Positions 4,790 to 57,999 of a DNA stretch of 64,000 nt are shown here, piece by piece; position 1 is the stretch's first letter; each line of letters opens with the position of its first letter. A program made the translations under genes and the position numbers. The stretch is from Octopus sinensis (Eukaryota): NCBI RefSeq assembly GCF_006345805.1, contig NC_043003.1, forward strand, positions 107,632,001-107,696,000. Reading direction: 5' to 3'. The notes beneath the pieces are model-generated. The model did not search any database. It was not told the DNA's origin and saw nothing but the letters and a program-made list of their open reading frames with translations.

Positions 4790-4908
4790 CTAGAGTGGAT
4801 AGAGATATTCTGCAATGCCGGGACTTTCAATCCAGTCACAGTGTATATGAAGCTGCAGCGGTTCATTTACGTTTATCAATCTGAGCTGGTTGTGGAGAAC
4901 GTTACCAC
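4790..4908 (-). CDS. Host gene exon E (probably last coding exon): (G)GNVLHNQLRLINVNEPLQLHIHCDWIESPGIAEYLYPL*
   Basis: Very strong acceptor ttctctattttctttttccattttcccag|GT. Phase-1 frame is open for 38 codons to TAG. The peptide aligns with exon B (H..L.LI..[DN][QE]P.....CD). Confidence 0.7.
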
Positions 4909-7077
4909 CTGGGAAAATGGAAAAAGAAAATAGAGAAATCACTGAAGTGAATGCATAAACAATATCTATTGATATCGAAATATTAACTTTTCGATAAAAA
5001 GGAAAAAATGTCGGGAAGCAGGTACTATTATGTTCGAGCCTTTCTCAAAAGTATCAACTACTTAAATAAAGAGGAATAATTATACCCAGGAATCGAAACG
5101 AAGCTGAAGGATCAGCTTGCCGAAAAGGAGCTTACCGCCTAAGTCTTTCGTGTTAGCTATAATGGTGCAAATTGTGATTGAAATATAGACAATTTCCAGT
5201 TTTCTATAAAACGTCTTTACTTTCGAATCACACTAAGCAGCTGACATCTTTCCATCGATAAAGGAGTATAAATAAAAAAATAAGTTAAATTATTGGTCTC
5301 CTTTACAATTCGCCAAAGGCTTTGGAATTGCCGATTCACTACTGGGTAACCACTGAGGGGGGCGAGTCGAATTTACCTTTTGCCCTTCAGAGGTCGATAA
5401 TTAAGTACCTGTAGAAATTTGTGTTTGTGGGCGTCAGTTCAAGTTAGAAATCACTATCTGTAAGTGTTACAATCGATAGACCAAACTGCGTGATCAAAGA
5501 GGATTATAATTTCAAAGTGATGAATATTTCCTATTTGACCTTAGTTGATATTGATCTTCCAACTTCATTCAACATTCTGCTATATCCCCTCTATATGACA
5601 AAAGTATAGTTTATCTCATACAAATGTATATTAAAGATGGCCTGTAAGCTGAATATGAACGATTGTTAGTATACTAAAGATGGTCAGTGTATTAAATATA
5701 TTAAAGATCGTCAGTAAATTTGCTGGTAATTTTTTATCAGTTAATATTTGTAATAGAAAGTATCAAGCGCTGTAGGAAATGGTAAGCTGTCATCAAAGAG
5801 AATTTCCTCATACAGAATTAATTCAGTACGAATGGTTTAAACGTTAAATTTCCTATTTCCCTTCTATAATATGTTAGATTGCTGAGTCAAAAAAGAAACC
5901 AGTCTTTATAAATGGTGAATCCCGTAGCTCAAGAGACTTGAGCCGACGACTAATTTTGAATTCACCGTCAATTTCAGGTACTTATCTATATCACTATTGT
6001 CGTTAGCATAGAATAATGAAGTAAAGGGTAAAGTACCCATTGAGGTTGTTCAAAATTCTGGAGCTTTTGAGCTTTCTCAAACGATTCAGTATTTGCCAGT
6101 GGAGGATGAAATTGTTTACATTTACTGACGTCGAAAGCTGTACAACATTCCAGGATTTAGCTCTAATTTTAATCATTTTGAAGCAACTTATAAATTTAAT
6201 AATTTCCTCGTACGTTCTTCTCTTAAATAACGAAACGTGTATTTTGACGAAGATTTTGTGTCAACGTTCTCTCAAAATCTCATCTGATTTCCAAAGTAAA
6301 AAATTTAAAAATAAGTTTCTAGTGAATCGAATAAGCCACTGGGTTTCTATTTACACCTGGAGTCATTTCATTTTACTTATGTACTTAAGGTCCATTCGGG
6401 ACACTATGAATACCACAATTCCAGTTGTTTCTTTAAAATTTAGTCTTATCTTATGTAAGAATATTGCATTGTGTGAATAAAAATGTCTTCCTAGATAACA
6501 TCACTAGGTTGCATTCCTAGTTCATTTCTGTGATTCTCCTTTCGCGTAGGTGTTGGTTGCTATTAACAACAAGCAATGTTTCTTTTCGACGGTCAAAATA
6601 CTTACAAAGAAGCTGTGTAGTTCATTGGTTTAGACGATGGTGAATGCAATGTATAACTAAGTCGTTTGCTTACAAACTCTTCGCTTAAATATTTCCGCGA
6701 GCAAAACCTATTCACCGAGGAATAAAGATTACGAAAGGAACAACAACAATAACACCAAAAGCATAAAGTAAATAAACTCTCTTACTGTTGAGACGTGACA
6801 ATTTATATGCGTAGTGCGGATCGTATTCCAACCGTTCCACTTTCAAACAGATTAACGCATCGTGTCTTCCAGGATCGAAATTCTTCGCTCTGAAAGATGA
6901 AAAATAATAAAAGGAAAAGTTGCATGAAATAAAATGACTGAAATAAAATAATCAAATATTGTAAATCTTAATTAAAAGTAGATATATTCCTGAAAAGAGA
7001 AATGTTCGAGTGGAATGGTATATTGGGCAAGTAACAGAAAGGACGGCAGTTCGTAATCTAAAATCGGTAGAGTAATC

Positions 7078-7217
7078 CTCCTCCTCCTCCTCCTCCTCCT
7101 CCTCCTCCTCCTCCTCCTCCTCCTCATCATCATCATCATCATCATCATCATCATCATCTCATCATCATCATCATCATCATCATTATAATAATTATTATTA
7201 TTATTATTATTATTATT
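7078..7217. repeat. Compound microsatellite (CCT)n-(CAT)n-(TTA)n
   Basis: Direct reading; the TTA part abuts the 3' end of the R4/Dong LINE. Confidence 0.97.
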
Positions 7218-7315
7218 CAGTAGTTTTATTTTTATAGCGTGCTTTCACTTCACTACCGAGCGCAGCTCTGTGTGCCTTGGGTATGTGCTGTGATTTGTTG
7301 TGATGCTCTGATGGT

Positions 7316-54957: not shown

Positions 54958-55195
54958 AGACGCAGGCGTAGCTATGTGATAAGAAGCTTGCTTTTCAACC
55001 ACAGGATTCTGGATTCAACCCCACTGCGTGATGCCTTGCGAAAGTTCTACTGTAGCCTCGGCCCGACCAAAGCCTTGTGAGTGGATTTGGTAGACGGAAA
55101 GACGCGCCTCGTATATATGCATATATACATCTATGTGTGCGTGTGTGTGTGTGTGTCTTTGTGTCTGTGTTTGTCCCCCACCACCGCTTGACAAC
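54958..55195 (+). mobile_element. SINE family B 5' half
   Basis: gacgcaggcgtagctatgtgataagaagcttgc..ggattcaaccccactgcg. Confidence 0.85.
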
Positions 55196-55353
55196 GTCGC
55201 AGCGTTACTCATTTTTACCAGCTGAGTGGACTGGAGCAACGTGAAATGAAGTGTTTTGCTCAGGAACACAACGCGTCGCCCGGTCCAGGAATCGAAACCA
55301 CAATCTTACAATCATTATGCTGACACCCTCACCACTAAGGTACGCGCCTCCAC
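55196..55353 (-). mobile_element. SINE family C (OR-like) 5' part with tRNA-like head
   Basis: Minus strand gtggaggcgcgtaccttagtggtgagggtg..ggtttcgattcctgg (A and B boxes). Confidence 0.85.
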
Positions 55354-57827
55354 AAACACACACACACACACACACACAAACACAAACAAACAGACATGCA
55401 TTCGTACATACATATATATATACATTTATACACGTATATATATAAAGAAAGACAGCTATAAATACATTTATTTCTGCAAATATACAGAACTTTATATAAA
55501 TCAATCTCTCCTACACCACATAACTACATATACAAAGACATATGGAGAGAAATAGAAAATAAGAGTGAGAAAGAGAGAGAGAGAGAGAAGGAGAGGAGAG
55601 AAAGAGAGAGAGAGAAGGAGAGGAGAGAAAGAGAGTGAGAGAGAGTGCGTGAGAGAAAGAGAGGAGAGAGAGGGAGAAGGAGAGGAGAGAAAGTGAGAGA
55701 GAAAGGGGAGTAAGAGAGAGAGAGAGAGAGAGAGATACAAAAAGAAGAGAAAGTTGAAGAAAAAGACTCAAAAACAAGAAAAGTCGGGAAAAAACAGAAT
55801 GATTTTTGTTTGTGATTATTAACGCAGATGCCCAAGATAAGTCGTCAGAGTTAAGACACATCTTAATATGAAAATAAAACTTGCAAAGATGCTGAAGCAT
55901 TAAATAATCTGTAACGAAGCCAGCGGGCAAACCAGCATTTTTATCTCTTACAGTTTATCTGTGGTCAGTTGAGTTGTTTGAAAAGGTTACGTTTCTTAAG
56001 TTGGTAACCGATATGATCTTTCAGCGCGAGTTATCGCGGATCTGTTTGTCTCAGGAGAGTCATAATGTTTATATCATAATCTTTATACCATATGTTTTGA
56101 ACAACGCTATTCTACAGAGAACTGAAGCACAGCTGGAAATTTCCGCTCGGAATTAAAAAAAAAAAATTCACTTAAGAAATTAGGGCTTCTCGCTCTAGAG
56201 GAGAAATAGCCGAATGGATAAAGTATTGGATAAACAAGAAGAATTTTCTTTTCTTTTCCTTTTTACTTTTAGTTTTGAGCTGCCTTACTTAATTTTGTAT
56301 GGTTTTTCTTTAGTATTGTTTACCTTAATTCGATACAAATTTAATCTCGATTCATAAAATTCATCGTTCTTCCTACATTAAGTTAGTATTTGCTTCACTA
56401 TTAAATAAACAGATTGTATATGCTGTGAATTTGTATCTGTTGCTGAGAGTTTCATCACATCTTTGTGTAAGACACTGGTTTTTTAAAAGTCGTAGTTCAA
56501 ATACCTGTCGTCTATAAGACAGTACATATGTGAACCTTTCTCATGCCCCATGTTTATATGGGAAAAGGGATGCACATCCACTGCTCCACAAATTACATTT
56601 ATAATACAAAAAATTGAGCTAAGACTTACAAGCTAACAAAACATTGCTAAAAAAACTAAGTTTTTCCATTTCTTAGAGACAGGGAGCTCTATTTAAAGCT
56701 CAATTGGATATTGAATGTATTAAGTGTCTTGGCTATGATCAGACTACAACTATAGTGTTATGATACAAACTAACAAAAAACTCAGCAGTCCACCGGCACT
56801 GCATCCAATAGGCCTAAACAGTTGCGATTCAAAGAGATGGGAACGAATTATAAATTCTATTTTCCAAATACTAAAATGAAATAAGAGTTATATATATAAA
56901 CACATATATTCAAAGAGTAGTGTTTATCATTGTGTTTGGCTGACTGCACAAATGTATCTTTCCTATAGCTATAACATAATGCATTTGAATCGACGAGGGA
57001 GTTTCTAAATATTCACTCGACCACCTGCTAGCAATGGTGGCTAAATTTCCCTAAAACTGAATCTTGCTATCTTCAAAAGGAACACTTTAAATGAATTTTC
57101 CCAAGGTATGCTATGCCTTTAAAATGTCTGCATTTGGGTCTAATAAGCAGTAATCCTATATGAACAGCATCAACAACTTCAGTAAGCTACGAACTGTTAA
57201 GAACGATATGCATACCCCAAAGAATATACACAGCTGGATCAAACTTTGACGAGGAGACGGTGTTTGTAATCTGTTCAAAGATTAGCATCATGGTGTTGGC
57301 AACATTTTATATTTAAATGGGAAGCTATTTGGGGAGATTAAAACATAATTTGGCCAGACAAAGAATTGAAGTTAAATGAAAAATGTAAATAGGAACTTTG
57401 ACGGTAGATTTAATCTCAAAATTTATAACAAAAGAGCATAAATTTGACTACGTAGGTTTATTGATTTTGAAAACAAGCGTTAGGCATTACCAAAAAAAAA
57501 AAAAAAAGAACGTCTTCACAGAATATAGAAATATAATGTATTTGCATGATATCAAGGTGGGTTCGATTATTCTGAAGTTGTGTTTATCTACTAATGACAT
57601 TTATTGGAGATCCGCTGCTAGTCGGATCTGCACTAATCTCCAATAGCCGTTTAGATGTCAGACTACTGAGCAAAATGCTAAAAGTTTAGTTACGTGTGTT
57701 TCTTAGATAGAACTGTGCTGTGTCTATGACCAAAACAGCTAATTCACAAATTCCTCACTTTTTCAAAGCTGTAAAATCAGAATAACGAGTAGCTAAACAT
57801 GAATATTTTAAATCATTGGTAACTTAC

Positions 57828-57999
57828 CTGATTAGGAAAACATTATTTTTCTTCTCTTCACATTTGTATCTGACTTTACCATTTGCTGAATCGTAGGTGA
57901 CCATAACACGTTGGCGTATTCGCAAGAAATTGGTTTTGTTACCGCCAGAAAAATACCATTTGTCTCGTAACTCTGCGCTGATATCACAACATGAAGATT
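57828..57999 (-). CDS. Host gene exon A (phase 1 to 2): xSSCCDISAELRDKWYFSGGNKTNFLRIRQRVMVTYDSANGKVRYKCEEKKNNVFLI(R/S)
   Basis: Acceptor ttttgtgcgtgtttgtttctaatctcgctctag, consensus donor CAG|gtaagt; 172-bp open frame with non-repetitive composition. Confidence 0.8.

Follow-up and report, generated by a model that had tools for sequence, protein, structure and literature searches.

A tandem pair of Cys/Trp domains encoded by a nine-exon gene in repeat-rich DNA of Octopus sinensis

Gene identity and exon structure

The 64,000-nucleotide stretch of the Octopus sinensis genome analyzed here (NCBI RefSeq assembly GCF_006345805.1, contig NC_043003.1, positions 107,632,001 to 107,696,000), referred to as the window in the following, contains exons 4-9 of LOC115214146, a nine-exon, single-copy, expressed minus-strand gene that extends over about 262 kb and whose product is a tandem pair of Cys/Trp domains. 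A preliminary description of the window, prepared from the nucleotide sequence by itself, had proposed a multi-exon minus-strand gene spread across the whole stretch, with four exons termed A, B, D and E that were thought to pair as A with D and B with E, and this general layout proved to be right. We assign a probability of about 0.88 to our explanation as a whole, which comprises the gene, the duplication, the family placement and the inferred secreted role.

The gene had been described as hidden. It is in fact already catalogued in RefSeq as LOC115214146 and, for Octopus bimaculoides, as LOC106875689, and the database entries for both contain neither a domain nor a function nor any mention of an internal duplication. 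A protein homology search with exon A (padded with X residues to pass the length filter, scoring being limited to the exon) retrieved P0001, a protein of 322 amino acids annotated as 'uncharacterized protein LOC106875689 [Octopus bimaculoides]', with 100% identity, together with P0002, a relative of 293 amino acids. The 90% cluster of P0001 includes proteins from O. sinensis (XP_036360984.1) and O. vulgaris (CAI9726403.1), both corresponding to P0020, as well as a protein from Argonauta hians. When P0001 was aligned with the window by tblastn, residues 59-322 fell into six minus-strand blocks, and joining these six exons in silico at canonical AG/GT sites resulted in an open product of 263 codons that deviates from P0001 solely by N138S and S155G, i.e., by the residues present in P0020. 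Over residues 60-322, P0020 and the product of the spliced exons agree without a single sequence difference, S138 and G155 included. Because the product matches P0020 at these two positions, the window gene is the O. sinensis/vulgaris orthologue LOC115214146, whose 322-residue product carries the database name "uncharacterized protein" (Octopus sinensis/vulgaris), while LOC106875689 (O. bimaculoides XP_052825661.1) is its orthologue.

All six exons in the window lie on the minus strand. Exon 4 (57828-57999, 172 nt, residues 59-116) is the previously noted exon A and is documented by tblastn at 100% identity, by splicing and by the transcript contigs L008, L009 and L011 described below. It opens domain 1, contains C63, W73 and C105, and is flanked by a phase 1 intron on its 5' side and a phase 2 intron on its 3' side. 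It is joined to exon B by the middle exon of domain 1, exon 5 (50736-50839, 104 nt, residues 116-151, KKVYRPNKDGVLCLGF...VRYN, with C129), whose donor site leads directly into a (GT)n tract (50700-50735); this is the true bridge, and the small bridging exon formerly placed at 47179 is not part of the mRNA. Exon 6, the former exon B (46025-46153, 129 nt, residues 151-194), has phase 1 introns on both sides, closes domain 1 with C176 and encodes the inter-domain linker. Domain 2 is opened by exon 7 (20548-20713, 166 nt, residues 194-249, PGCRIPTDLRGEWRY...NCESRDGNMFLF, with C197, W207 and C238), which is confirmed by tblastn at 100% identity and by the transcripts; it is the true paralogue of exon A and shares its intron phases, 1 and 2. 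The middle exon of this domain is exon 8 (6786-6889, 104 nt, residues 249-284, with D259, C263 and the sequence SRLN). Exon 9 (3767-4908) corresponds to exon E, for which it had been left undecided whether it is terminal. It is: 119 nt, made up of 116 nt of coding sequence (CDS; 4793-4908, residues 284-322, with C307, W309 and P313) and a TAG stop codon (4790-4792), are followed by a 3' untranslated region (3'UTR) that reaches to at least 3767.

The start codon had been expected to the right of the window, and this is where it was found. In the first 40 kb beyond the right border there is one further exon only, encoding residues ~21-58 (window-equivalent positions 73011-73125, L001:9011-9125), and a whole-genome search located the ATG exon at C7:107758944-107759007 (window-equivalent 126944-127007) and a 5'UTR exon at C7:107898195-107898276 (window-equivalent 266195-266276). 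The octopod N-terminus (residues 1-22 in P0001 and P0020) thereby comes from a separate exon, C7:107758944-107759007, and forms an extra extension of ~20-30 residues ahead of the hydrophobic leader, which decapod and other molluscan orthologues lack. The true start codon of the octopod protein could be the in-frame Met13 or Met20.

Transcripts, copy number and sequence constraint

Mapping of transcripts to the window provided three contigs that break at the junctions of exons A, B and E. L008 and L009 (1.4 kb; SRR16213284 and SRR16213285) are Logan contigs, assembled from sequencing runs, and L011 (2.2 kb) stems from SRR32601320. All three are colinear with the six exons of the window plus one upstream exon, at 96-99% identity, and their breakpoints coincide with the predicted AG/GT junctions. 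In the terminal exon, L008 aligns from 4908 to 4444 and L011 from 4908 to 3767. None of the three contigs aligns at 28.2 kb or at 47179. Since these short contigs encode the full protein while the gene spans hundreds of kilobases, they represent spliced mRNA. The decapod orthologue is present as transcripts of 1.2-1.7 kb in five further runs. As an aside, SRR16213284 is given as a library of the mealybug Planococcus ficus from Mexico (PMC13340311); octopus contigs such as L008 and L009 under a mealybug label may reflect octopus reads carried over between libraries or an accession that was mis-cited.

In the genome searched for copies (2.72 Gb, 13,516 contigs), exon A has one match and the whole protein matches this locus alone, so the gene is single copy. 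In comparison with the transcript of a sister species, nine synonymous and one non-synonymous changes were counted (pN/pS 0.03), and the CDS is 98.7% identical, versus 319 of 350 aligned columns (~91%) in the 3'UTR.

These data decide between the gene model presented here and two other ways of reading the locus. The preliminary description put its gene together from A, B, D and E; in this model, the second repeat was opened by D at 28.2 kb and the small bridge lay at 47179. The minus strand does contain all four peptides on which it relied, in open frames with AG/GT-like flanks: CDISAELRDKW in exon A (57956-57988), FHILSPELIPRDQPVSIDTQCD in exon B (46074-46139), LSTILQADW in open frame D (28273-28299) and LHNQLRLINVNEPLQLHIHCD in exon E (4835-4897). 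A, B and E are real exons, as established by protein mapping, splicing and three transcripts. The open frame at 28042-28359, D, is no exon, even though its acceptor and donor sites are plausible and it loosely resembles exon A in the pattern D-[IL]-S-x2-L-x3-W: like the bridge at 47179, it is missing from the annotated protein and from all three transcript contigs, which refutes this model for the main isoform. Furthermore, tblastn does not recover an alignment of A with D even at E<=100, the best non-self match of exon A in the whole window and all six frames is the overlooked exon at 20548-20713 (CRIPTDLRGEWRY..., E=0.001), and the last ~140 nt of frame D (its positions ~175-318) belong to a dispersed repeat resembling a short interspersed nuclear element (SINE). 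We regard a gene with D as its fourth building block as hardly tenable. The pairing of B with E reflects real homology. Their similarity is weak by itself (third-ranking tblastn match in the window, E=0.9), and the homology is accepted because both are the third exon of their three-exon unit. It could also be argued that the exons are transposon-derived or pseudogenic open frames without host function, given that the introns are dense in reverse-transcriptase frames of long interspersed nuclear elements (LINEs), SINE copies and microsatellites. However, every exon is single copy, the frame is intact over nine exons that are spliced into mRNA, pN/pS is 0.03 and orthologues span chitons to cephalopods. 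Because of the single-copy exons, the 9:1 excess of synonymous changes and a CDS that is better kept than the 3'UTR, we consider a transposon origin to be excluded for all practical purposes. A reading without any database search thus found a real gene of six small exons scattered over 53 kb of repeat-rich DNA and correctly deduced its internal duplication, and the same reading was misled by a chance open frame beside a SINE.

Internal duplication

The protein carries two homologous domains of ~130 amino acids, at about 60-193 and 194-322, in agreement with the two tandem repeats postulated earlier. Residues 59-193 and 194-322 are related with 26% identity (BLASTP E=2e-10), and family profiles of the two halves align over 124 columns with an hhalign probability of 98.8% (E=6e-17). 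The exons of the first half measure 172, 104 and 129 nt and those of the second 166, 104 and 116 nt, the middle exon having 104 nt in both. Intron phases are 1-2-1 in either half, and the introns are inserted at homologous positions of the alignment (...FLIR| vs ...FLFR| and ...RYN|S vs ...RLN|S). On the basis of the matching intron phases and the identical length of the middle exon, we conclude that the gene arose by tandem duplication of a three-exon block bounded by phase 1 introns.

Among 19 family members, the invariant positions of the first half are C63, C105, C129 and C176; the second half has C197, W207, C238, D259, C263 and C307, and the linker R192. The residues W73, R148, P161, P200, R249, R281, G285 and P313 are nearly invariant. 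Each domain therefore has four invariant cysteines and an invariant or near-invariant tryptophan that is part of the opening motif C-x-[IF]-[SP]-x2-LR-x2-W. The repeat consensus formulated previously holds in the form C-x-[IF]-[SP]-x2-LR-x2-W ... C ... C ... C-D. Judging from their number, the four cysteines of each domain would suffice for two disulfides.

Family members and relation to DUF7043 and DUF7044

An exhaustive phmmer search of 1.84 billion representative proteins with P0001 yielded 18 representatives at E<=0.001. Every named relative is from a mollusc and annotated as 'uncharacterized' or 'hypothetical'. They originate from the cephalopods Octopus, Argonauta and Acanthosepion, the polyplacophoran Liolophura, a chiton, the gastropods Lymnaea, Gigantopelta, Lottia and Batillaria, and the bivalves Solemya, Pinctada, Saccostrea, Crassostrea, Mizuhopecten, Pecten, Argopecten and Potamilus. 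We are dealing with a small family that, as far as its sequences carry names, is confined to Mollusca. P0005 from Solemya velum (KAL5006574.1, 823 amino acids) has the two-domain module at residues 22-287 and, after it, ~530 residues that comprise multi-pass hydrophobic segments as well as a tail of low complexity. Rather than a true architecture, this protein is probably the result of a gene model fused with a neighboring transporter-like gene.

The domain had been called unrecognized, which is not wholly right: the octopus protein falls just under the Pfam cut-off, and several of its orthologues score above the gathering threshold of 27 bits for DUF7043 or DUF7044, both domains without known function. 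For DUF7043 these are P0034 (41.5 bits), P0003 (30.8), P0004 (30.6) and P0017 (30.0), and for DUF7044 they are P0003 (30.0) and P0002 (29.6). At E<=1, DUF7044 matches 18 and DUF7043 16 of the 19 family members, and the alignments cover about 65 of the 94-104 profile positions. A Pfam scan of the four isolated exon peptides returned zero matches, single exons being too short.

Octopus has bona fide DUF7043 proteins at three other loci, L005 (C1:5.36 Mb), L006 (C1:2.55 Mb) and L007 (C6:66.97 Mb). These are intronless frames of 431-708 codons that encode DUF7042 and two DUF7043 modules, in contrast to the nine exons and 262 kb of the window gene. The frame at L005 (649 amino acids) has DUF7045 in addition, two of the three proteins end in a hydrophobic tail, and a Cys-rich stretch appears ShKT-like in our own interpretation of the sequences, without a Pfam match. 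Large multi-domain proteins of this kind, which combine DUF7042-7045 and sometimes ShKT, are lophotrochozoan; their relatives come from molluscs and from the annelid Capitella (e.g., CAPTEDRAFT_190800), where a ShKT domain is added. The window family and the multi-domain proteins have in common that they open with C-x-FP-x2-LRG-x-W followed by spaced cysteines, that they possess N-terminal hydrophobic leaders and that they are uncharacterized. They differ in that the window family consists of a short tandem pair (270-320 amino acids) devoid of DUF7042, DUF7045, ShKT and the C-terminal hydrophobic tail. Going by these sequence features, we propose to file the family under the DUF7043/DUF7044 (PF23070/PF23071) clan, in which it would form a divergent branch of stand-alone tandem pairs.

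Structural models

AlphaFold2, run on an alignment of 19 sequences, predicted two all-β domains and, ahead of them, an N-terminal hydrophobic segment that is helical (mean predicted local distance difference test score, pLDDT, 79; predicted template modeling score, pTM, 0.54). In each modeled domain, eight successive strands are joined by hairpins and followed by a short helix and one last strand, which makes about nine strands. A model of domain 2 alone, calculated for the natural fragment P0011, reached a pLDDT of 79.7 and a pTM of 0.70. The combination of AlphaFold and Foldseek that had been recommended as a check thus delivered two modeled β-domains and no solved counterpart: neither the two-domain nor the single-domain model had a match at E<=0.001 among 350,542 chains of the Protein Data Bank (PDB), and when PDB sequences were searched with profiles of the whole family and of either half, chance matches were the only result. 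The weak neighbors of the individual domains, at template modeling (TM) scores of 0.3-0.4, are avidins, lipocalins, ZinT and two-barrel proteins on the one hand and levivirus coat proteins and β-trefoils on the other. According to the models, the domain would be a β-meander that is calycin-like in appearance and has no demonstrable solved relative.

Two known folds deserve to be weighed against this description. The first strand tryptophan and a late arginine are a signature arrangement of lipocalins, and small, secreted, disulfide-bonded β-meander domains with a first-strand tryptophan, as in the window domains, are typical of calycins; the likeness is a resemblance and the comparison a lead only. 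If it were to reflect the actual fold, each domain would form an up-and-down β-barrel of the calycin type (lipocalin- or avidin-like), and the role of the protein would be to carry small hydrophobic ligands outside the cell. Arguments for this reading are the modeled order of elements (eight hairpin-connected strands, helix, final strand), the position of W73 and W207 in the first strand and the near-invariant R148 and R281 late in the domain, which would be compatible with such a barrel, as well as the recurrence of avidins, lipocalins, ZinT/YodA and two-barrel proteins (BFA1, DUF3598, single-chain streptavidin) among the weak Foldseek neighbors. However, the whole chain reaches a Foldseek E value of 0.04 at best and a single domain one of 0.5, with TM scores that do not exceed 0.41 relative to the target and 0.33 relative to the query, the best avidin or lipocalin matches have E=0.27-1.2 and TM scores of 0.30-0.41 on the target, levivirus coat proteins and β-trefoils score as well as calycins, and profile searches of PDB sequences recovered neither a lipocalin nor an avidin. 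We therefore judge the calycin assignment to be unlikely, albeit worth keeping in mind. Far less probable still is a zona pellucida (ZP) module, that is, a polymerizing unit of ~260 amino acids composed of ZP-N and ZP-C. It is suggested by UniRef, which names the Lottia member V3ZWK4 'ZP domain-containing protein', and superficially by size, by eight invariant cysteines (4+4) and by two β-domains. Against it, Pfam Zona_pellucida (PF00100) does not match any of the 19 members at E<=1 or the Lottia protein at E<=10, the top 50 Foldseek PDB matches of either model do not include a ZP-N or ZP-C structure, and the octopus sequence ends with ...HCDWIESPGIAEYLYPL, 15 residues past the last cysteine, where a furin site, an external hydrophobic patch and a transmembrane or glycosylphosphatidylinositol tail are all missing. 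The family consensus for this C-terminus is SPxRPEFLYP.

Proposed role of the protein

The strongest hydrophobic stretch of the protein, residues 31-47 (mean Kyte-Doolittle value 2.5), constitutes an N-terminal hydrophobic targeting segment, the relatives open with short classical signal peptides, and N-glycosylation sequons are present at N79 and N230. Together with the cysteine pattern, these features outline a possible route for the tandem Cys/Trp protein: it would enter the endoplasmic reticulum and the secretory pathway, two disulfides would form within each domain, N79 and/or N230 would be glycosylated, and the protein would be secreted or, less likely and in octopods, reside in the membrane as a type II protein. 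The earlier suggestion of a secreted invertebrate protein is thus probably right, given the ordinary signal peptides at the start of the relatives. A non-enzymatic role is favored because the invariant residues, Cys, Trp, Arg, Asp and Pro, are a structural set and not a catalytic constellation. We see roughly even odds that the protein is an extracellular, disulfide-stapled, N-glycosylated, non-enzymatic binding or structural protein. The most specific form of this reading, considerably less likely, would be a calycin-like carrier of small ligands. A more far-reaching proposal, which we put forward tentatively and consider rather doubtful in its entirety, is that the unit of ~130 amino acids with four cysteines and one tryptophan represents a β-fold without a solved representative and a lophotrochozoan-specific extracellular module (DUF7043/7044 clan), of which the window gene would be the minimal pan-molluscan two-domain form with a conserved extracellular role, e.g., as a carrier or recognition factor.

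A number of further points speak against the explanation favored here. Some ~30 residues precede the octopod hydrophobic segment, which may therefore serve as a type II signal anchor instead of a cleaved signal peptide. Fold and disulfide pairing rest on an AlphaFold model derived from 19-24 sequences. With 23.3 bits for P0001 and 22.7 bits for P0020, the octopus protein stays below the DUF7044 threshold, and neither sequence matches DUF7043 at E<=0.01. Comparison of the halves with bona fide multi-domain DUF7043 proteins by hhalign resulted in moderate values only (E=5e-5 and 3e-4, probability 67% and 40%), over 40-81 columns that are anchored on the common C-x-FP-x2-LRG-x-W start and run from the first cysteine onward. 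The mealybug label is attached to the accession series of two of the three transcript runs, which renders species and tissue of contigs L008 and L009 uncertain (PMC13340311). Finally, a literature search on the gene, its orthologues, DUF7042-7045, the Pfam accessions and the LOC and UniProt identifiers did not find a paper.

The gene is already catalogued yet unstudied, is one of many lineage-restricted, uncharacterized secreted proteins of molluscs and gives no sign of a surprising mechanism. What makes it a target for structural and expression work is the clean duplication unit bounded by phase 1 introns, the strong purifying selection, the conservation from chitons to cephalopods and the lack of a solved structural neighbor.

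Repeats and other features of the window

The SINE-like repeat mentioned above is about 115-125 bp long (...GTTCAAATTCTGCCGAGGTCGACTTT...) and is present in about ten copies on both strands of the window, including the 3' part of frame D (28042-28165). Nine further copies are located at 10917-11029, 17370-17490, 37954-38068, 39110-39217, 40017-40131, 47538-47640, 50215-50310, 1511-1570 and 859-886, and a first look at the whole genome gave at least 2840 candidates with 75-89% identity. Intronic remnants of retrotransposons without long terminal repeats, with broken frames and matches to RVT_1 (115 and 107 bits) and zf-RVT, are found at 7503-10003 on the minus strand and at 33570-35530 on the plus strand; the latter coincides with the G+C maximum of the window (45% at 32-36 kb). 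An open frame of 198 codons on the plus strand (12076-12672) matches the helix-turn-helix domain of Tc3-type transposases with 24.4 bits, which is under the cut-off, and is probably a decayed Tc1/mariner element. The open frames at 60045-62446 on the minus strand (442, 203 and 164 amino acids) and at 26196-26747 on the plus strand (183 amino acids) have no Pfam match; a '...YIG...' segment in two of them bears a possible resemblance to the GIY-YIG nucleases of Penelope-like elements. Large (ATAC)n microsatellites lie at 54088-54947 and 51066-51453, with 215 and about 82 copies, respectively.

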